Part shown: positions 15,507 through 55,175 of the stretch, piece by piece | Numbering within the stretch: the stretch's first letter is position 1 | Layout: every line of letters starts with the position of its first letter | Source: Kudoa neothunni | Taxonomy: Eukaryota; Animalia; Cnidaria | Reading direction: 5' to 3' | Length of the DNA: 64,000 nucleotides | Assembly: GCA_964304625.1 (NCBI GenBank) | Contig: OZ199840.1 | Location: forward strand, 3,423,631 to 3,487,630 | Made by a program: the position numbers and the translations under genes | Notes under the pieces: generated by a model | Database searches by the model: none | What the model was told of the DNA's origin: nothing | What the model saw: only the letters and a program-made list of their open reading frames with translations

Positions 15507-17303
15507 ATGGCAAATACAATCTTTGGCGGTTCTGTGTGGTTTGCTGTTCCATTATTGTGTTTTATCACATTGAAAATCCATGTATATACGTTAGAAACTG
15601 TAGAATATGGGAGCGAATCGATTCCCTCTATAAATTCGGCTGATTTTAAATCCGCTAGCGGTCTGCTTGAGTTTTTCTACCATGATTTTGAAAAAATGAC
15701 CTTATATATACAACGGCTGTCACATCAATATCCTCAGATAACTAGGTTATATTCGGTGGGTAATTCGGTGGAAGGAAGAGCACTTTGGGTTCTCGAAATT
15801 ACCGAAAATCCAGGCGTACATGTTCTACTTAAACCCGAATTTAAATATATTGCCAATATGCATGGTAACGAAGCTGTGGGTAGAGAACTTTTGTTGGATT
15901 TGGCAACCTATTTTTGTAAAAACTACTACTCAAATTACACTGTTAATTATCTCCCTCACAGATGTAATCTAATAATGGGTTATAGATCAGGAAACTTTTA
16001 CAAGAAACACGGATTCATTTGATGATATCAATGAATCCGGATGGTTTCGAAAAATCAAACAACAACGGAAGAGTTAATTGGATTATTGGCAGAAATAATG
16101 CTCGGGATGTGGATCTAAACAGAAACTTCCCCGATATATTTGATATAAAGAAAGGCAACATACCGGTGGCCCAACCTGAGACGTCCAACGTTATCAACTG
16201 GATGAACTCGATACCTTTTGTGTTGTCAGCCAATTTGCATGGAGGAAGTCTTGTGGCCAACTATCCCTATGACAATAACTATGAGGGTGTCGTAAAAGAG
16301 ACGCCCACCGATGACAACGACATTTTTGTTTTTCTAGCTACCACATACTCTTTCACTCATCCAACAATGCATAGTGATACACCCCCCTGGGAATGTACAG
16401 ATGTTATGCCGGATCGATTTCGTAATGGAATCACCAACGGTGCTGCTTGGTATAATGTTCCTAATGGAATGCAAGATTTTAATTATGCATTTTCCAACTG
16501 TTTTGATATCACACTTGAACTTGGTTGTAACAAATTTCCCCCGGAAAAACTTCTTCCAAACTACTGGGAAGATAATAGGGACGCTTTAATATTATTTATA
16601 ATGCAGGTATATAAAATTTGGGACTCGAAATAATAATCGAAACTGAATTATTTAATATAAAATCTATTAGATTCATCGTGGAATCAAAGGGATTGTGACA
16701 GATCTGGATGGACGACCTTTGTCAGGTGTGAGTGTGAATGTTGAGGGAAGATACCACACTATCAGCTCAACCAATTATGGAGATTATTTCCGACTTCTTT
16801 TACCTGGCAGCTATAGGATTAAATTCTCTAAAATTTCATTCGAACCAACAACTATCGAAGTATTATTAACTAATTCGAATCCTATCGTTGTGTACAATAT
16901 CACAATGACCCCTCAACAAATGCAACCAATGAAAGCATACCCGGACAATCCCAGGAAAAAAAATATTTTTCCACATAACAAAAATCATCTTTTGGTCAGA
17001 AATGCTGACAAAAAACCCAGTATAATATCAAAAGTACAGAATATAATTATTGTGTTTTTAGAGAAGGTGGATTCAATTAGAAGGCGAAAAAAGTTTATGA
17101 CCAATCATCTAATGAAATCTTTATTTAAGGATAAAAAAGATAATATATTGGTGAAAAATGAAGATAAAAAGAATAGTAAGAAATTTAAAGAGATAACAAC
17201 TTTTATGTTATTATTAGAGAAATCGAATTTCAATCAAAAGAAAAAGTTTATGAAAAATCATTTAGAGTGGTCCGTATTTAAAGATCAAAGACAAGCTGCC
17301 TAA
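15507..17303 (+). CDS. Secretory M14B zinc carboxypeptidase (CPD/CPE/CPM-like; one catalytic domain, transthyretin-like domain, duplicated basic tail)
   Basis: Hydrophobic N-terminal signal; KPEFKYIANMHGNE, GRNN..DLNRNFP, SANLHGG, NGAAWY, GMQDFNY, TLELGC, GDYFRLLLPG. Introns 15942-15985 (44 nt) and 16607-16670 (64 nt). Zinc ligands and catalytic Glu are present. Confidence 0.93.
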
Positions 17304-42287: not shown

Positions 42288-43575
42288 ACGTCTAACAGCC
42301 TCATTAACACAAACATATATTAATTTGTCGATCAAAAAATATATATTATCATTTTACTATATTGATATCGAACTTGTTTTGTGACATGCTACATGAAACG
42401 TGCCAAAAAGCATTCAGTATTCAGTAATTGTGAAAACAAATAATTATATATTTTGTGGGTCCAACGTTTACAAATAGTAAAATGCTATTAAGGACCCTTT
42501 AAAAAGTTTAAATAGAAATTCATATGCCATCTATTTTATTTTTTACTTGAGTAAATTGCTTTCTGATCTTTTTAGTTTAAAAAGAAAGAATACTGCCAAT
42601 AATATATCAAATTGTAATAATTTTTGGTTTTTATTCGTGTACTTTATTTTTCTAAATAAAATCCCTCCTCACACTTTGTTTATTTAATATTTTTGTCTCT
42701 ACTAGAACAAAAGGTCTATTTACCGGATACATAAAACGTGTGATTTTTGGCCTTAAAAATTCCCGTTTAATTTAGAGATAAATTATTATCTTTTATCAGT
42801 TAATTTTTACATCATGAATTATTCACCGAAAAACTAATTAAATATACGTGAAAACTTATCCGATATGAATTTAGTTATAATGTTCCTATTGTAAAATTAA
42901 ATTAATGAACATCGATACATTAATAATAAGGAAGGGGCTGCTATTGGCACGGTTCCTAATATCCAGGTATGCGTAGTTTTGACTGCATTTAATTATTCTT
43001 GACCATTGGGAGCGGTAGCGATGAAACAGAATTAATTTAATACAACATATTCTTAGAAATAAACTTTTTAGATCACCTATAACTAGGAGCTACAGGATTA
43101 AACTTGAGCACTCCCACGCACCGACATTTTGGATTAAAATAATCATTCGATAAGTTATCCCAACTGAGGACCTGAAGCTGTTAAATAATTTATAAAAAAA
43201 ATTTATTATTGGGTCAAAATTATTACTATGTAAATTTTAAGGAGCTTGTTAATGTTTCAAAATAATTAAAGCTCTAACATTATTTTTTATAATTATACCC
43301 GAAAACCACTCAGCACTAATATATCTTCTTCAGAAGTTACTCAATCTTCTGATATAATTTAATTACTCTTTCAAATGGTTTGGGTTTTAAGTTTCGAAAA
43401 ATGAAAAAACTAGTATTTTTATCACAAAAAAGTATTAATAGCTAACAAACAAATTTTGTGAATATTGTAGGATTTATTTTCAGTTTGGCGTAGATCAGGT
43501 CGATTTGTATGCTTTTCTTGAGTAACAAAATTAAAAAGATTGAAAAGAGTTCAATTGAGATAGACTTTATTGTTT

Positions 43576-46570
43576 TCAGTTGCTGGTTGAAGTTTGCATT
43601 CCATCGTATTCACAAATAACAATTTCAGGAAGAACTGGCGTCTTTACTTCATTGTTTGTAAAGTTGTCGTTAGGACTATCAATTTGTGTGAGTTTTGAAT
43701 TAGAAAGTGTATTTTCGGATAACCAGACTGTCGTGGATCTCTCATTTAAACTAAAAAACTTTTTGAGAGTTTTTCTTTTATTGTTAATATCTTTATTTGG
43801 TAATAATTGGTGATTGAGACTTTTAGCCCAATAATTGGAGTTATAATAATCTTGGGAATAAGAGATAGGACATGGCGTAATATTGGAAGTTTTTATATCA
43901 AATTTCCCATTATTTTCTATATCTAATGATAAATTTAATGAAGGTGGACTTTTAGAGAATATGGTTTTAGAACTCTGAATAGGATTTTCGATGTGATATT
44001 CTATACTAGCTGACTTTCCTAAGTGAACTCCGTTTCCCTAAATTTGTTAAATTAACAAAGTTACATGCAAAACTCGAAGGTACTGTATAAACATTTGCAC
44101 TTGGAGAATCATGGCTACATTTGAGTCGATTTTCTAAAGGAGACGAATACTTCACATTGTTAGAGTCAGGATTAGCCCAGAAACTAAAATCTTTTGTCGG
44201 AGGTATCATCGACGACTCAGATGGTTCCACACAGTCTGGAGCAATATCTGATTTTACTTCAACGTTGTTTAAGCGTGGTGATGTCGTCTTCGGAATTCCA
44301 GATGTTGATTTTGTTCTTCTTGTACGCCGATTGGCATCAACAACAATATTATCAAGATCGGCCACAAAGTCCCATTTTGGGATACTTAAATATTGATAAT
44401 CTTTTTCTTCCAGCTCTAAACTTACAGAATTGGAAGTATTTTTATTATGGTGTTTGAATTGGGGATCATTGGCCTTTGTATTCGATTTTGAAGTAGAACT
44501 AGTTGTAGTTGAGGGGGATTTCTTGTTAGCTTTGCATTGGCACTTTTCAAAAAATATATTCATATTTCGTTTTAGAGCTTTCATCTCATTTTTAACACTA
44601 ACCAGCTCGTTATTTATGGTATCAATTATCCTTTCCTTGTTGAAAGCCAGCATCTCGAATATGGAATCAATTTTTTGATTCAGTTCGTTGTAATCCATTG
44701 AGATGACAGGTTGACTGGTGCCTTTTGAAAATCTATCGGATGTCATCTTCATCATGTTTATTCCACTTGGCCGAGGATGATCAGTCTAAATGCCGTAAAT
44801 GTTTAAACTATTATCAAACATATATGTATATGGCATGTTCTTCAGCAGAAAAACAATTATATTTAAAATATTTCTAAATTATCCTAGATTTGACATACGT
44901 TTCGATTCGACAAAATATCTGTAGAAATTTTTTCTGGGAATACAATTCCAGTATCACTTGAAAAACTGTCATAAATATTTTTAGCTATGTTTAAATATTA
45001 GTCTTATATGCGTACGAATTTCAATTGTAGAGGTTACTTATTGAAAATATGGTCGGCATTTTTTTTTGTGTTAAAGTTTTATTGGACGAACCCTTGGATT
45101 CAATAGGAAACTTAGTCTCCGAAACCGACGAATTGTAACTACTATAAAGGTTCAGTTCAATTTAATTTGAAGAGGAACATTGAATAAATATGTAAATTAC
45201 TTGCTTGAGGTTTTGTTGCATTCACTCTGCTCAGAAGATCCATAGTTCATAATAAAATTCTAGTTCATAAATGGTGGATTATTCCACCACATTAACACTT
45301 AGCATATGCTTACTCTGTCATAGTTGCTGTGTTCTTCTGTTTGTTGAGGTGAGAATGAACATATCGAATGACGATGCTCTGGTTTATCTGTTTCGGGTGG
45401 CTAATTATGTCCAACGTATCTTTCAGTAAAACCATATCATACACTTCAAAATATTACCCATTCAGATCCAATACAGAAATCCCGGTTAAACGGCCAGTGG
45501 GGGTCATTTTCCATAAAGGCATTACCATAATCAGTTTTCTATATGAAATTAATTTTCGTTATTAAATGAATATATTTTATTGAATCCAGAATTTACCAAG
45601 TTAAAATCCGGGTTTTTAATTTTAAAATTAAAATTTTATAGAAATTTCCTTATTTTTTTATAAGGATCAGAATCCGTTAGGAATTAACAATACATATTTT
45701 TGAAAATCTACTCTATACATTTATCTGCTTGTAATAATACATTTGTTTATTTTTAAAATTATTATATCAGTAAAAGATAACTGAATATGAAATATAATCA
45801 CTTTTGATTGAGGTTTTGGGCCATTTGAAGATTTTTCAACTACTTAAATATGTGATAAACCAAACCTAAAATAAAAAATGAAGGTACAAGTGATTGAAGC
45901 GTGGCGTTGTTTCATAGCGGATTGATCAGGTTCGTTCTCTATTTAAGAAAAACCACTGAAATCGATACATAACATAAATAAAATATGTTAATCGAACTAA
46001 TTATTTTCAATAATATATTATAAAATAAATTCTTCCTATTTTATTATAAATAAAAAATCTACGTTTATGTAGTGATTTGCTCGTCGGTATATTGCATTTG
46101 TCTTTGTCCAGCGTAGATGGTGCTTCACTGATATCAACGCTCTCAACTCTATGCTGTCGCGTGGCCATGTGTTTAATTTTAAATGTCTGTTTTTTATTTT
46201 CTTCTGTATGATTTTTATTATTTACTACGTTGTCAGCTATAGTTATTTTGGTCTTTCTTCCAACTATGCTAAGCTACAAATTCATTGTAAACAGTTGAGA
46301 CATTTTCAGAACTAATGAAGTACGCTTTTTAGTTTGTTTTTCCGGAGTTCTACTTTTTGATTATTTTTATGAGCTGTGAGGTTAATGCGGGGTCGAGAAT
46401 GATCAGATCGGAGGTTTGCACAATTCAAATCGTCTGAGCTCTCACAAAAAACAAAATCCAATATTGCAGAAAATTTCCATTGCGTATCCCAAGTCTTCGC
46501 AAAGAGGCTTGTGGGCTCCACATTTACCTGCTGCTGGTTTAGGCATGGTACTTTTGGATATTCCCCCAAA
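43576..46570 (-). CDS. Orphan family paralog A: S/T/K/N-rich protein with a coiled-coil module (start codon unresolved, upstream of about 46570)
   Basis: Frame-consistent exons: ~46530-46324, 46273-46063, 45938-45888, 45839-45802, 45538-45458, 45400-45314, 45259-45201, 45141-45038, 44984-44899, 44785-~44090, ~44037-43576 (TGA). Supported by homology and shared intron phases with 52903-55175. Confidence 0.65.
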
Positions 46571-47297
46571 CTCAGTGTATATTATTGTTTTTAATATATC
46601 GATGGAAATATCAAGTCTTGTCTTTGCTGTAGTGCCTAGCTCGCGATGGTGTGCTCGAGCTAACAACTAATACTATTCACTTTTCTTGAATTAAGATATC
46701 GTGAGAGATCTATTCATTCCCAAGATTATGCTGATTGACGATTAAATAACTCGGAACAACGAGTTGTCCATAGCTATCTAGTAAAGTGTGCAGGGAAGAT
46801 TATTTAAATTAAGTTAAATTGGTGTAAATTCGAATAACTTACCTATAATTGGTATTTCTCAATGACATTTAGACTCTGATTAATCTCCCACCCTACGGAC
46901 CAAATTTTTCAATCGCATTTACCAATTTTTTAAACATTGCATAAAGTTGTATATATTAATCAATTTATTAAAGGTAACGTTCTAAGGGAGACAATCATAT
47001 AATCCTGTCAATTCATTTAATAACTCCACCATAATATTTTTGCTTATGAATTCCCTTTTTAAGCAAATGAAATTTTAGGCTCAATGTTTTCAATAACCTG
47101 TTATAATTGAATGTTATACCTATATTCTTTTAATAAACAATGGTTCCCATCATAATCATGAAACATATTGACTTTTAATATGAGTGAAAAATTTGTAACA
47201 TATATGATATATAGTTATAGTTATAGGCATGGTAAATATTTTTATGGTATAGAAGCATGTCTGAGAATGAATTTTTTTCAGTATCTTTGATTTCATA

Positions 47298-48270
47298 TTA
47301 ACCCTCTAAGTATACTTGGGTTCTTTTGGACCCCAGGCGACATTAATTATCAATTTTCTATCACATTCACTTGTGAGAAATTTTTGGCAGTCAGTCTATT
47401 CTTCTAAAACGTTCTGTAGTAAAATTTCACCAATTAAACAACTTTTTCATTCCGTAGAAAAAAAGTTAATGCAAAAACACCCTCCAAGTAAAATTGCGGT
47501 CTTTTGGACCCCACGATTTTTTTTCATCCAATTATCCAAAATATTGATTTAAATGTTTGGGAAAACTTTCAACGAATTCTATCGAGTAAATATATTTCTA
47601 TTGCATGAATATCATATCTTAATCCACACCGCGCAATAATTATTTTCAATTATGTGTTCAAGTGATTTTGATAATAATTACTCTGATACCGAGTCTTCAG
47701 ATTCATTTTTTTGTTTCATGATTATTTATTATCAGAAAAATTGGATATTGATACAAATATACAATTTAACATATTAATGAACAAGAACGGAATGTTACGG
47801 TCGATGAACCCACCGTCGGCATCTAGATGCTAGGATATGTGTTGCAAATATTATGAGTGGTCACCCTGGTGTTTCTCCGTTTTTTTACAAAACACTATTG
47901 ATATTATCAGAATATTATCTAATTCTGTTATGTACGCAATTATTTTAAAATATACCAGCACATCGATGAAAAAATTGTTGTTGATGAAAGTATCGATTTT
48001 TATGAAATAGAATTGGATGGGTTCATTAGCTGTTTATTATTTATGGGAATTCACAGGGTTGATCGAGAATCGGTTAAAGAGATATTTTGGTTAGAAGAAG
48101 GAAAGATACATCGTGATTTATTCTTGTTACATAAATTTCTCAAAATAATGCAAGTTTTACATTTTGATGATATGGACAATATTGAGGTAACAAAATAATC
48201 CGAGGAATTTTTGCCATATTTACGAGCTACGGCATATTTGAGTTGATTTTTTACACGTAGTTATCGTCCT
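47298..48270 (+). mobile_element. piggyBac element left end plus transposase fossil
   Basis: TTAA|CCCT end, internal direct repeat tcttttggacccca (~47321 and ~47500), and E-L-D-G-F-I-S-C-L-L-F-M-G-I...I-F-W...I-M-Q-V-L-H-F-D-D. Confidence 0.75.
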
Positions 48271-49014
48271 AATGAAGATTTCAAGTGTATCCATGTTACC
48301 TGTTTTATGTAATAATCTAATGTTGTTTTTGACACAATAATATCTAACAAATTCTATGGTTCTGGATGCTATAACAATATGATAAAACACATATTAAACA
48401 TATTATTTATTATTCTTATTAATATAAGATTATTGTAAAAATTTTTATTTTGATTGATTTGAAATGTGAAAACAATAAAAAAATAATATAATGTGGAGTA
48501 GAAAGGCGAAAACATGAATTAATCCCGAGTTCGAGACTGCGCACTCAGTTTAAAAATGAAGATCACATTGATGACCATGGCAAAGGCCGCTAGAGGTAGA
48601 ATCTACAATGGGTATTATTGAATTGAAGTTTTTTTCCATCTGAATCTTCACACGTATACTTTAGTAAAAGACCGAATTTTAAAAGTACCAACCTACAGCG
48701 AGAGACAATATGTGAATAAAAATATCGATCTTATTAATCACAACGAGAAATATTTGCGGGTCCCTTGTTTGAATGAGGTTGGCCATTATCAATTAAACTA
48801 AAAATAAGGACTCATTAATTGATATAGGTTCAAGAGAGGAATTTCTGTCGATTCAACTATCAATATTATAAAAATTCGTTCAGACGCCGTCTTCCATACA
48901 TGAAACTGAAATTTATAAAACACCCCCATAAACACTATTATTAGTATTGTTGGTATTGACGACTTGTATGTCATTCATTGCGCTTGCGCGTTAATTTCTA
49001 AAAATTCGTAGTTA

Positions 49015-50668
49015 CAGTGGTGTCTCAATATTGCGTAAAATATATTGGATTTTTGGGGCCGGGGAAAAATTACGCAATTTCGAGTTGCTTTTTTTGCTCA
49101 TGCGCGATAACTTTAATTTAACATTTCCTACAATACAACTCATCTATTCTATAATTTTTTTATTAATTTATTGATAATTTCGCGTAAGACATCCTTAAGT
49201 TGATGTACAGAAAATAATTCAATTGGATTCTCAATACACATTTTTTTCGCGGATTTATAAGATTTTATAATTGTCAGGTTGTAACGATTTCATCGTGTTT
49301 TATAAGATCAGGGTTTTCACTCTAAAAATTAAATTTACCTTAATCCTCTTAATTTAAATGTATAATTTTATTTTCTTCCAACAAAACAATATCATTACAC
49401 ATTATTATCTACACATATGGATATTAAAATTTCCTATTAATTACTTTGAAGCTTTATCTTGATAATTTTTCAATAAAAATAAATTATTGTTGTTTGAAAA
49501 TAGGCGGCTTATTAACTCAATTACTAATATTTTAACTGTAACAATTCACTAATCTATTTTAACGTATTAAAGTAATCGAATATGGCATATTTAAATATTT
49601 TTCTCTAATTGGTTGTTATGTGGTGAATTATTCCCAGGTAAATTGGTTGCACCATATTAGCAGTGTTTTTGATAGATGTAGGAGCTGGATGTTTTCGAAA
49701 TAATCGATAGATTAAGGACAATATGAGCATTGTTATATTAAAATAAAAACTTTTCTGTTTCCTTTAATGAACCTCTGGCTCATATCTTTGAGGATCTGAT
49801 GAAATACGGATGAAGATAATCACACATTTATTTGCGAATGGCACTAAACTGAAAGCTCTTTAATTCCTCTAAAACGGAGATTTTTATTAAAATTTTATTA
49901 TTATGTGTAATCGAAATTTTTCTTCGGTCATTGTAGACGTGATAAACATCGTAGCACGTTTTTGAATTATTTTACACCATTACATTGTGCTAATTTTTAA
50001 TAATGGACGTACGCTGTATCAGATGTTCATAAAATTGAGCCGTCTCATGTCTCATCAAAATTTAATATGTATTCTGGATTGTATCTTGACAACATCTCGG
50101 GAAAATTTCTCACCCATACATAAATATATATAAATCAGCCCTCTCCTTCTCCGTGAGATTTGAGTTTTTCAGACCGTAACGCCTTCCGCAATTATTAAAC
50201 TAATCCTCAGTTCCGCTAAAATCTTTTATTCAAATATCTTAGACAATAATACAAGATTATTCGAGCATTAAAAAACTAAATAATAATTTTTCTCTCGCAT
50301 TGAAACTACCCAACTGTAAAAATTATTTTAATATCTATATTTTCGGGGTTTAAATATTTTTCGAAATTTTTAAATATTGGAGTCTATGGTTTTTTGTTGT
50401 TTAGACAAAGTTCTAAAAAGATTTAAATAACCTATTTTAAATGATCGAACAATATTGAAGTTAATATAAATTGATAAACCGAAACGTTTTACAGTAATAT
50501 AATTAGCACCCGATTTAGACCTCAAAAAATTATAGTAATCAATTATTTTTATTATATCTTCATTAGTTATTTGAGAACTTGCAATGCTTTTTATAGTGCA
50601 TCCATCAGATTAAGGGGATTAAAATAAAAAAAAATAAGTTACGCAATAATGAGACTGAGACACATGGT
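49015..50668. mobile_element. Decayed TIR (Tc1-like) element
   Basis: Left end TA|cagtggtgtctcaatattgcgtaa and imperfect inverted right end ttacgcaataatgagactgagacac; repeated ttacgca subterminal motifs. Confidence 0.4.
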
Positions 50669-52902
50669 TTTTCCTAATTTGCTTGATATCCGCCAGTTCA
50701 AAATTTTGTTTTTTCGTATGATTATACATTTAAGAATATTGTATAAGATTTATTTAATGAATTAAAGTACATAATGCTTATAAACTAAATTACGCAGTAT
50801 CGAGTCATGACTGTATTTTCAAGCGAAAACTCGATATTTGCGTAACTTTTGTAATATACTTCGATAATTGATGGATGAGTATACGAGATTATTTTTTAAC
50901 TTGTTTTTAAATGGATAAAATTCACCAATATCATTTTCAAATTATTTTTGAGAAAATATTCAAAATAGACTACCATGGAAATACAATTTCTTTTCTTGTT
51001 CATTTAAAATTTAAAATTAAATTTTAAATAAACACAGGGCATGAATAAATTAACTTGAATCGTAAAAAATCAAATATATTAATTGTAATAGAAACAATGA
51101 TAGTGAAACATTAATTTCGGATTGTAAACCAAATTATAGTTCCATTAGAGAGATGTATCTATGATTAATGGTCAGCTGGAGACTCAGTATTTTCTATGAT
51201 AATTGCAGGTGGAATATAATGTGGGGGCTCAGAATAAATGTCTTGATCATTTTTGCGGATATTTTGAGAAAGAGAAAGTTTCTTCTTGTGACCAGTATAT
51301 TCCTATAGTCATTATCAATCACAAAAAATTTCACATTATTTACTAATTGAATATAAAATAATAAAAAATGATATTATATTAATCCCCTAACGAAATGAAA
51401 ACTATCTACTATGGCGATTCCAATGGAAAGAGGTAACAACAATAATAGTGGATACATCTAATATTCATATCGAGAAAAACATAGATTTAATATGTAGAAA
51501 GAATAATTTAAATTAATAACCTTATATTTTACAATACAAAATGAACACTGTTAAACTCATTATTATCAATACGGTAGACATCGTTTGCTCGTCGTAAGAT
51601 TACGTAAAATTAATAGATGAAAAATTCATCTTTTAATTGTAAATTAGAACTTCTAATTCATTTAAAACAAATAATACATATTTTAGCAATTTTTTTTCAA
51701 ATATATATTATATATATTTCAGATATACAAGCAGGATTACAGCTCCAAAAGGGATTAATATTTTAAAGTTAATCTATGGCATGGATCGGGAGAAATTTCA
51801 TTTGGCACTCGCATTGTTCTCTTGATAATCCACCTTTAATTAATTGATTAATTATTATAAAATATTATTTATAAATTGACATTTTATCGACAAAGTTTAT
51901 TAAAATCGGCGAGTTTCGGAAACTATCGCTATGCCATCGGTCATTAGAATTCTCTGATATTTTATTTTTATAATTGCCAGAAAATAGCCCAGACAGATCT
52001 AAGTATAAAATTTCAAATATTTAGAATTGAAATAATTGCAAGAATTTATAACTAAATCTTTACAATTGTAAATTCCCAATAATTACTTTGGATAGGTAGG
52101 TAAAAGTCTAATAAGATTATTATGTACAAAAATAATTACAATTTATACAAATAAAGTCTAAAAGTTTTTGAAACAATTATTTATTGAATAACTCTTATAA
52201 TATAAGGAAATAAGACCCAATTTTGTTAAATTTCCATTGCGTGAAATTGGCGGGAGAATAAATGTTTTTAATGCATAACTAAAGTAATAAGGGTCTAAAC
52301 GAAGTATTTTATTTTGATCTATTTTCAAAAATACTAAAATAATCCAAAAGTTCTAAAATTATTGATATATGATCGAGATTATTAATTTAAGAAGGTTTAA
52401 GGAATTAGTTTGGCTGTGGCCACTTTTATGAAAACATTTAATCTTAAATAGGGTGAGCGGTTTTTTGTTTGCCACTTTAATCTTCCCAGTTCAAATTTAT
52501 ACATTAATATGCATTTCAATTTTTAAAACTTGCAATATTTCATTATTTTTGACCCACCACTACACCCACCGCTAAGGACTAGAAATAATTCATATAGTCA
52601 AAAATAAATCTCTCTGAATATTTTTTGTCATTAAAAGCCATTTAAAATTATTATTTAGTAGAAAAGAGGCGGTAATTCTAAGCTATATGACGAGTAATTA
52701 CGATTCATTTAGGATATTTATTGAATAAAAGCAGTTAATAAGAATATTAATATTTTTAATATAACTCTTCAATCAAAGAATATAGTTAATTATTTTTTGT
52801 TGTTCGCACCCTAATATAACTTATCTACAAATCGTCATAAGCTTGTACCGTTAAATGCCATATTTTACCGTAATCAACTTTTATAAAAATTTAATATAAG
52901 GC

Positions 52903-55175
52903 TTATGCCGAATTAACTTCAATAACCTGCTCACATTTTATCTGAAACAAGATATTGTATATTTTTATGGGATAGGAATCAAATATTGGATAATCACCTC
53001 CTCGTCGTTAGGGGATTAAATATTTCAATAAAATGAGAAACCTAATCATTAATAGTAACAACTTACTCTTTTGATTAATTCACTATGGGTGTTTGGAATG
53101 ATAAGTGAACCACTTTTGGATCTTTTTGTGATAGCAGGAGTGTTAATGTCTGAGGGTGTTGGTTTTATTTGTCCATAGAATTGGTTAGTGTTTATGGTGG
53201 ATGAGTTGATTTTTATTCTACTATGTTGCGCCATCAGTTGATGGCTTTGACTTTTATCGTAACTGCCAGTGTGTTTGTGCCCAATTTTCCGATATTTTTC
53301 CTGGTTATTTTCCACTTCATCTTCCCATATTGTATCTCGTGCTGAAAATAGTTGTTGTCTAGTTCTAAATAATAACTCATGAAATAATGATAGATATATA
53401 TATATATATATATATAGATCAATAAAGGTTGGGTTGGTATTACTTTTTCTTAGGTGAACTACCACCTGTGCTATCTAAGTAGACTTAATAAAAAAAGAAT
53501 ATAATTTTTCGTATTACTAAAACTCAAAGATCGCGTTAATAATTTATTCGTCACATCATCTTCTTTCGGAGACTTACAGGAAACGGTTGATGATTTTTTG
53601 CTATAGTGACCATTATTAATTAGAAGTGTATCTACATAATTTCTAGTTTTAACGCTCCGAACTGAGTTAATTACTACCACTAATAATAAGTTTCTTTATT
53701 TCCGTTATTTCGTCCATTATTGTATCCATGAGCTCTTGATTTCCATTGTATAGCAGGTGGTAAATTGCATTAATATCATTTTTTATATAGTTGAGTTGAG
53801 TTTGTATATCACCCTGATCCACACTATTTTCATATGCTTCTTCATATTGGGGTTCGTTAATTGTGTCTAATAGCTATATCAGTTTTGTTAATTTTTTAAA
53901 TTTATCCATCAGATCACTTTAATATTTTTAATATCTCCCTTATTTCCTGCTTATTTAATAATTAATTAAACAAAATACACAAGCACAGAACTAATACTTT
54001 GGTAAACACAAGGAACTGATTTTGCTGCGGAAAATGACGATTTCCCACTATAAAAGTGACAAAGCTCACTGTTTACATATTCCGACGTTGATTCAGAATC
54101 TCTATAGTGGAACTAGTAAGCTAATATAATTTTCATATTGAATAACTTTTTAATTTGATCAGATTTGTCAGTAAAATATTCTTCGATGTGACACGATGAT
54201 TCAATTATATATCTCTTAAAATACCAATCAGAATAATCATAATATTATTAGCTATTTGTATTGTTATATATAAATAATGTTACATCCGAACTTCTCTCAT
54301 AGTTATCATCCAAGATGTAGTGGTGTGTTAGGAATGATCCGCGGTGTGAGATGTCGCTCAATTCCAACTGACTTTCAACCTTTTTGCATTAGCCTAGTTA
54401 TCATTCACAATCCGATTCAATTTACCGCCATTTCTTCATCTGGTAGAACGTATAATTGTTCATCTCTGCACATTTTCATGAATTTTGAGCTTGACTACAA
54501 TAATATGTAGTGATTATTAATCGGTAGACATGGATTACGTTTGATGCTAGATTAGTATGAGTTAGCAAAAACAGTCACATAAACGAGTTACATATTGATT
54601 TCCTTTCCGCTGCATTTCGAGGATCATTATGTGTTAAACTCGAGTAAAGTTTGGTTTGAGAGAGTCTTATTACGCTTGATACTACAGTGATTGTGTTATT
54701 GTTGTTGATAATATTGGTTTTCAATTCAAATACCTGGTATAGGTCTAACTTCAAATGATTTTTTGTTTCCTACGTTGGGGTTGTGATATCATATGCAAAA
54801 AACACAAACAACGAGTTACTGAGTGAATAAGTGTTTGAAACATGGACGATTTTCTAAACACAAACCCACATTAGAATAAATCAGAAAACTGTAAGATTTC
54901 AAATGGTATTTTGTTGAAACTTATCTATCGAAAGTAACACCAGTATTGCTTAATATTACTTTTAGTTTCTTTGAATTATTTTTTTCACACTTCATATTCT
55001 TCATACATAGACTGCTTAACGACGATACAAGTCCATCTTCATCACTCAAAAGGTCTGATTCCAACCAATCGATTCCGGTGCCATTGGTTTCATAACACAA
55101 TCCCAAATGATTCAGAACATCAACTGCCCAAATTGGATCGTTTATATCATAATAAACTGATTTTTCGATTCTCAT
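52903..55175 (-). CDS. Orphan family paralog B: S/T/K/N-rich protein with a coiled-coil module, about 15 exons
   Basis: ATG at 55175. Frame-consistent exons include 54681-54592, 54546-54539 (8 nt), 54494-54426, 54379-54284, 54214-54147, 54101-53998, 53946-53918, 53873-~53678 and onward to TAA at 52903-52905. The junction near 54855-54960 is less certain. Confidence 0.7.

Follow-up and report, generated by a model that had tools for sequence, protein, structure and literature searches.

Two adjacent genes of Kudoa neothunni that share a helical module, probably old tandem duplicates

The locus

The window analysed here is a stretch of 64,000 nucleotides on chromosome C3 of Kudoa neothunni, a parasite of fish muscle (G000:C3:3423631-3487630, G+C about 29%). 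Two predicted genes, referred to as gene A (about 46.6-43.6 kb, product of about 660 residues) and gene B (about 55.2-53.0 kb, product of about 430 residues), are found in this window. Both are encoded on the minus strand, as an initial annotation of this DNA had proposed. From their sequences the two genes are probably paralogues. This rests on a coiled-coil module together with an independently recovered intron/exon layout. The N-terminal block and the short motifs, on which the initial annotation had also relied, do not contribute.

The K. neothunni assembly, from yellowfin tuna data, has a size of 40.2 Mb with an N50 of 12.0 Mb, three chromosomes and a mitochondrial contig of 18,219 bp (PMC12239612). 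The G+C content of the genome is 30.4%, and the median lengths of exons and introns are 112 bp and 49 bp, respectively (PMC12239612). It was annotated using protein hints alone, because too few RNA reads mapped (PMC12239612). Myxozoan sequences are described as extremely fast evolving (PMC12239612; abstract of 10.64898/2026.02.11.705288).

Gene models

The predicted parts of gene A are listed below in the order of transcription. Phases are given from the start to the end of an exon, and a slash marks a splice junction.

46324..46569, minus strand: first open stretch (exon 1 of the manual chain), donor AAAAGC/gtactt, phase 0, without an in-frame ATG
46063..46273, minus strand: exon 2, 211 nt, phase 0 to 1; also returned by the independent gene finder, with a codon bias reaching the 95th percentile of the null
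45888..45938, minus strand: exon 3, 51 nt, NEPDQSAMKQRHASIT, phase 1 to 1
45802..45842, minus strand: exon 4, 41 nt, phase 1 to 0
45458..45538, minus strand: exon 5, 81 nt, phase 0 to 0
45314..45400, minus strand: exon 6, 87 nt, ..HRHS..NYDR/gtaagc, phase 0 to 0; codon bias at the 98th percentile
45201..45259, minus strand: exon 7, 59 nt, phase 0 to 2
45038..45141, minus strand: exon 8, 104 nt, phase 2 to 1
44899..44984, minus strand: exon 9, 86 nt, phase 1 to 0
44084..44785, minus strand: exon 10, 702 nt; a long helix (exon residues 32-86, about 44692-44528) followed by a low-confidence tail rich in S/T/N/K
44591..44737, minus strand: A copy of the shared module, 49 aligned residues, Smith-Waterman score 59 against B
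43576..44037, minus strand: last exon, 462 nt; stop codon TGA at 43578-43576, conserved end motif PEIVI[CH][ED]Y.G

Downstream of the stop codon of gene A an AATAAA is found at 43571-43566. An internal ATG at 44755 in exon 10 is an alternative start. For the 5' end the gene finder offers another model, having an ATG exon at 46546-46528, an intron of 94 nt and an exon at 46433-46324. This intron takes 27 of the 37 residues of the A side of the N-terminal block (the W/C block), which in this ab initio model may be mostly intronic. Two adjacent similar units of 18 nt, TTAGGGAAACGGAGTTCA and TTAGGAAAGTCAGCTAGT, are located at the intron/exon boundary before the last exon (44050-44010, minus strand); they read NLGKRSS and HLGKSAS, in two different frames.

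The corresponding list for gene B contains several candidate exons of very small size.

54960..55175, minus strand: exon 1, ATG at 55175, donor CTAAAA/gtaata, phase 0; low-confidence AlphaFold model
54820..54853, minus strand: candidate micro-exon (uncertain), 34 nt, phase 0 to 1; recovered only with a prior peaked at 48 nt and a low intron penalty
54592..54681, minus strand: exon with NDPRNAAERKSI, 90 nt, phase 1 to 1; alternative models 54769-54592 or 54769-54579
54539..54546, minus strand: candidate micro-exon (speculative), 8 nt, between introns of 45 and 44 nt
54426..54494, minus strand: exon 5, 69 nt, phase 0 to 0
54284..54379, minus strand: exon 6, 96 nt, ..HRGS..NYERSSD/gtaaca, phase 0 to 0
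54147..54214, minus strand: exon 7, 68 nt, phase 0 to 2
53998..54101, minus strand: exon 8, 104 nt, phase 2 to 1; an alternative of 115 nt, to 53987, scores 1 bit better
53918..53949, minus strand: candidate micro-exon, 32 nt, phase 1 to 0; alternative 53938-53918 (21 nt)
53678..53873, minus strand: module exon, aligned part 53840-53694; donor AGTG/gtagta directly 3' of the helix
53049..53631, minus strand: 3' part with candidate exons 53631-53524 (or -53555), 53474-53466 and 53341-53049 (or to a GTAAGT donor at 53066)

Exon 1 of gene B has a clean ATG with an in-frame stop ahead of it, and the codon bias of the proposed exons of gene B is coding-like. The module exon is a 68-codon open frame, followed downstream by a long last open frame. 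Inside the latter a (TA)n run at about 53400-53425 reads IYIYIYIY; this microsatellite is probably intronic. A possible terminal exon of 36 nt is found at 53000-52965 (minus strand), reached from the donor AAAAGA/GTAAGT at 53066 through an intron of 66 nt and reading EVIIQYLIPIP followed by a stop. Its start resembles the PEIVI..Y motif at the end of gene A and its orthologue (see below), which is a match of four residues, too short for significance and not used as evidence.

Gene finding

The initial annotation had given manually spliced exon chains for both genes. These chains are free of stop codons, use GT-AG at every junction, and have the phases 0 followed by 1,1,0,0,0,2,1,0. They were compared with the output of a gene finder that combines an intron-length prior with codon bias learnt on 116 long open frames and with splice-site matrices derived from 52 putative introns. 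The chains of A and B were judged without reference to each other. A gene for an M14 carboxypeptidase in the same window, having introns of 44 nt (15942-15985) and 64 nt (16607-16670) on the plus strand, was used as a test gene.

Using a broad intron-length prior, the manual chain of gene A was reproduced except for one acceptor of equal score. For gene B a seven-exon upstream chain with phases 0,2,0,0,2,0 was favoured, and one known intron of the carboxypeptidase gene was mis-called. Using a prior peaked at 48 nt, as suggested by the published median of 49 bp, the manual chain of gene A was returned exactly, and the model also has an intron of 46 nt that ends at the acceptor before 44037. For gene B, exons of 34, 90, 8, 69, 96 and 68 nt were found. 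The true 44-nt intron of the carboxypeptidase gene was recovered; it was correctly placed only with a prior peaked near 48 nt, and the gene is a useful calibration case for gene finding in this genome.

The peaked-prior model of gene B differs from the manual chain, which requires exons of 34, 8 and 32 nt, by an extra exon of 36 nt and by 115+21 nt in place of 104+32 nt (a tie within 1 bit). The whole model of gene A scores 3.8-5 standard deviations (sd) above reversed-sequence controls.

Sequence similarity between the two genes

A helical module is shared by the two genes. Positions 44737-44591 of gene A and 53840-53694 of gene B align without gaps over the 49 residues, giving the Smith-Waterman score of 59. 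Against composition shuffles this corresponds to a z of 5.97, and 0 of 2000 shuffles reach the score. Against heptad-preserving shuffles z is 5.4-6.2, and the match lies on a single outstanding diagonal (59, next best 32). Furthermore, a score of 59 is not reached in 136 control segments of the same genome (maximum 55). The best scores over 11,788 control fragments, covering 318,380 residues, were 49 for the A module and 47 for the B module. Therefore, the modules of A and B are reciprocal best matches by a wide margin, and the coiled-coil module that the initial annotation had described as shared is significantly similar.

The other similarities described there did not hold up. An N-terminal W/C block had been called homologous between the genes, and gives a local z of 1.55 (p 0.08) and a global z of 2.15 (p 0.03) against shuffles. 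The NEPD/NDPR block (z 0.35) and the HRxS..NY[DE]R motif (z 0.40) are no better than shuffles. In the shuffled-control test of the pairwise alignment, which the initial annotation itself had proposed, the coiled-coil module is significant and the N-terminal block and the short motifs are not. The peptides of the 104-nt exons give a z of about 0 against shuffles, and exons E1-E9 summed give a z of 0.99 (p 0.16). An unbiased collinear chain of weak matches, taken over all three-frame fragments, scored 310 for A against B, compared with a mean of 331 in the 136 control segments. Plain tblastn of the two regions against each other gave noise only.

Intron phases and exon sizes

The phase pattern of gene A ranks first among 2187 patterns in gene A itself, 5.5 bits ahead. 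In gene B, 76-83% of all 2187 nine-intron phase patterns admit at least one valid chain if micro-exons are allowed, so that the existence of a matching chain in B is by itself no evidence. We have therefore considered the rank of the A pattern in B. This rank is 78 of 1668 valid patterns with the broad intron-length prior, and 21 of 2187 with a prior on the published 49-bp median. The A pattern with one extra phase-1 intron is the second-best ten-intron pattern in B, 1 bit under the best.

The sizes of the exons just upstream of the module are also similar, being 81/69, 87/96, 59/68 and 104/104 nt for A/B. The 104-nt exon described in both genes is indeed present at 45141-45038 and at 54101-53998; in each case it is opened by a phase-2 acceptor (tatag/) and closed by a phase-1 donor. 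Eight introns with the same phases had been put forward as evidence of homology. Both chains are valid and the A pattern is ranked high in B, but with so many patterns feasible the agreement is weaker evidence than it looks. Conditional on the predicted junctions, we take the intron layout as moderate support for paralogy, with p about 0.01-0.05.

An orthologue of the last two exons of gene A

In all searches and structure predictions of this work single exons were used as query. An exhaustive search among 1.84 billion representatives gave one genuine relative, P0004, which is encoded on a metagenome contig of 1041 bp from ENA (L003). Two open frames of this contig match the tail of exon 10 of gene A (z 12.6) and the last exon of gene A (z 13.2), and the frames end in PPEIVIHDYNG in L003 and LPEIVICEYDG in A. 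The acceptor ..tttag/GG preceding the last exon is kept in both, which fixes the junction of gene A at 44037 and its stop at 43578-43576. By this orthologue of its last two exons, gene A is judged to be a real gene.

The identity between gene A and its orthologue is only about 25-33%. This points to a rapid change of the protein and would explain why older paralogues are unrecognisable outside constrained parts. Scans of JGI metagenomes with the alignment of the A/L003 tail, and with the alignment of the module, were empty.

In positions 1-135 of the contig the helix region is immediately followed by a likely intron, and this and two stop codons precede a serine-rich tail. In this the contig resembles gene B, which has the donor gtagta at 53677; gene A is without an intron at that place.

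Bacterial surface proteins with cysteine repeats (P0001, P0002 and P0005, with units C..P.AD..V.ASDACG) were also considered as relatives of gene A and rejected. The E-value of 2.5e-21 obtained for A against these proteins is a sum over 20 stretches of one repeat protein, and gene A has only one weak copy-like stretch. This stretch, C..SP.A....V..S.AC..V.LT, is located at 44190-44015 (minus strand), corresponding to residues 187-245 of an open reading frame (ORF) of 249 residues (44755-44006). From its sequence the likeness is probably due to chance.

Known families and structure prediction

None of the exons of A, B or L003 has a match to a Pfam family. For the module exons two candidates were rejected, ATG17-like (PF04108; 15.1 bits against a gathering cut-off of 43, E 0.016) and DUF6115 (11.9 bits against a cut-off of 27), and no other Pfam family was found at an E of 1 or better. 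A profile search of PDB with the shared module gave generic coiled coils only, with E 0.13 or worse, and the Atlas gave no usable look-alike. Word-index protein searches with the 249-residue exon of A, exon 1 of B and the last exon of A were empty. A search of the 40-Mb genome with the module profile found A and B only; a third match (E 0.016) lies in a piggyBac-like gene. The known family thus consists of A, B and one orthologue fragment. The earlier statement that no family is recognised holds within Pfam, PDB, the Atlas and the 1.84 billion representatives, the metagenome fragment being the only genuine relative among the latter.

AlphaFold predicts one confident helix for exon 10 of gene A (residues 32-86, pLDDT 85-90) and has low confidence elsewhere in this exon. 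For exon 1 of gene B the mean pLDDT is 46, and no confident fold is predicted. Neither a signal peptide nor a transmembrane-like segment was found in A or B, the highest hydropathy mean over 19 residues being 0.57. The core of the module, Q/E-x-[LI]-[IM]-D-T-I, resembles the centre of SNARE motifs, a likeness that serves as a lead only.

Other features of the window

Animal-type genes in the window encode the M14 carboxypeptidase, a serpin, a Sec1 protein and a Kunitz protein. A nematode origin of the DNA was considered and rejected, since the SL1 leader of nematodes is absent. One further feature lies between A and B and is not counted in the A/B family.

47923..48195, plus strand: remnant of a piggyBac-type transposase (Pfam DDE_Tnp_1_7, E 2.2e-5, 24.3 bits against a cut-off of 22.4)

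A longer piggyBac-like gene is found on chromosome C2 (L022, G000:C2:6895508-6898597), with frames of up to 159 residues.

Evaluation of the explanations

As a whole, the best explanation, which we favour with fair but limited confidence, is that A and B are old tandem duplicates of a family restricted to Kudoa or close relatives. The paralogy itself is held with considerably more confidence, because the module (p about 1e-3 or lower) and the intron layout are combined with the adjacency of the genes and their shared strand.

Several results weigh against this explanation. Outside the module, the sequence similarity of A and B is at chance level, and no DNA-level repeat was found between them. 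Profiles of the conserved A/L003 tail miss gene B, the tail of which is not detectably related. The structural match hinges on the intron-length prior and on micro-exons, and with the broad prior the manual chain of B is 22 bits below the best. The whole-gene score of B is only about 1.7 sd above reversed-sequence controls. There is no start codon at the 5' end of gene A (exon 1) in the frame of the initial annotation. Finally, four RNA runs carrying the same species label (three raw-read runs from 2026 and one contig run), in which the presence of the organism is not shown, gave zero reads on 43300-46900; this result is no sign that gene A is silent.

Another explanation is that the gene models are partly wrong. 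Gene A would then consist of the last two exons from the ATG at 44755, the upstream exons would belong to another gene or be non-coding, and gene B would be a decaying pseudogene or not one gene. With a high intron penalty the gene finder indeed gives only 44755-43576 for gene A, and the orthologue contig spans the 3' exons only. The lack of an in-frame ATG in exon 1 of A, the low score and the micro-exons of B, the passage of the last open frame of B through the (TA)n repeat, and junctions without RNA support in both genes fit the same explanation. However, nearly all proposed upstream exons are at the 86th-98th percentile of non-coding fragments in codon bias, and the chain of A is the top one of the 2187 phase patterns by its 5.5 bits. 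Gene B speaks against it as well, since the module exon has no methionine before the helix and upstream exons are needed, and exon 1 has its clean ATG after an in-frame stop. We regard partly wrong models as improbable, while leaving this explanation a real share.

It is still less probable that A and B are unrelated neighbours, in which the likeness of the helices arose by convergence of amphipathic helices and the phases by free choice among GT-AG chains in AT-rich DNA. Such genes would be expected to show what is seen in every block except the helix, namely chance similarity, and the feasibility of most phase patterns in B, a best B model under the broad prior without the A pattern, and a tail profile that does not detect B all fit as well. 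But convergence would have to produce a helix match that withstands heptad-preserving shuffles in one unique register and that is the reciprocal best match by at least 10 score units among 318,000 control residues. It would also leave as coincidences the position of the A phase pattern in the top 1-5% in B, the alike sizes of the pre-module exons, and two genes standing next to each other on one strand.

That A and B belong to a known metazoan coiled-coil family (SNARE-like, shugoshin-like or another short-helix adaptor), from which they have diverged extremely and beyond sequence recognition, is quite unlikely: the SNARE-like core is a lead and the extreme speed of myxozoan sequence evolution (PMC12239612; abstract of 10.64898/2026.02.11.705288) would allow it, but the module exons reach only the two sub-threshold Pfam families, PDB offers generic coiled coils, the Atlas has no usable match, and the helix is not followed by a membrane anchor.

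Interpretation

Under the tandem duplication that we favour, an old event would have given rise to A and B, and fast myxozoan divergence would have erased their similarity save for one helical module of about 50 residues. The very fast evolution of the protein, as seen in the low identity of A to its orthologue, would leave the copies alike only in this module. In both copies the introns and exons upstream of the module would have retained their order, their phases and their approximate sizes.

The products are predicted to consist of one long amphipathic helix within polar S/T/N/K-rich, probably disordered sequence, and gene A would in addition carry the C-terminal PEIVI.(E/D)Y.G motif. The helix may form a coiled coil by which the proteins pair as homodimers or heterodimers. 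Disordered arms with short conserved motifs could then recruit partners, and we infer an intracellular role as adaptor or scaffold. The best functional reading is thus a soluble protein that would pair via a coiled coil and present its disordered arms with short conserved motifs. The initial annotation had suggested a chromosome-axis, centrosomal or spore-structural scaffold, a putative role behind which stands one confident long helix in a chain otherwise predicted with low confidence. A more specific proposal is highly speculative. According to this, A and B would be Kudoa-specific scaffolds that dimerise through the helix, with A and B paired to each other, and would have a stage-specific role, e.g. 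in sporogenesis (valve, polar-capsule or cytoskeletal assembly) or in chromosome organisation.

It is already known that myxozoan genomes contain many fast-evolving lineage-restricted genes, which homology-guided annotation misses. A and B are one more case, an ordinary small family of this restricted kind in a genome where such genes are known to abound. The pair opens no long-standing question and will not surprise a specialist. It does illustrate that intron layout and one short conserved helix can still connect old duplicates after the rest of the sequence has decayed. This may be used in the re-annotation of Kudoa genomes, which is relevant to fish-muscle spoilage and food-borne illness.

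Comparison with known systems

Proteins with a SNARE motif (PF05739) likewise have a helix of about 55 residues, in the centre of which a polar position precedes a hydrophobic-D-x-I pattern. They differ from A and B, which have no Pfam match at an E of 1 or better and no C-terminal membrane anchor; in gene A the helix is followed by a tail of about 300 residues. Generic coiled-coil adaptors and scaffolds with disordered arms resemble gene A in having one long amphipathic helix within polar low-confidence sequence with short conserved motifs. In contrast to these, A and B match none of these families by sequence or by profile, and their oligomerisation is presumed from the helix.

Orphan genes of Myxozoa (Kudoa and Sphaerospora), as far as described in PMC12239612 and the abstract of bioRxiv 10.64898/2026.02.11.705288, are like A and B in being fast evolving and having no detectable relatives outside the lineage. 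Further properties in common with what these sources describe are the shortness of the exons, an intron length of about 45-60 nt and a likely omission by annotation based on protein hints. Unlike the generic orphan genes portrayed there, A and B form a specific pair, held together by a single conserved helix and by an intron layout that is predicted to be common to both.

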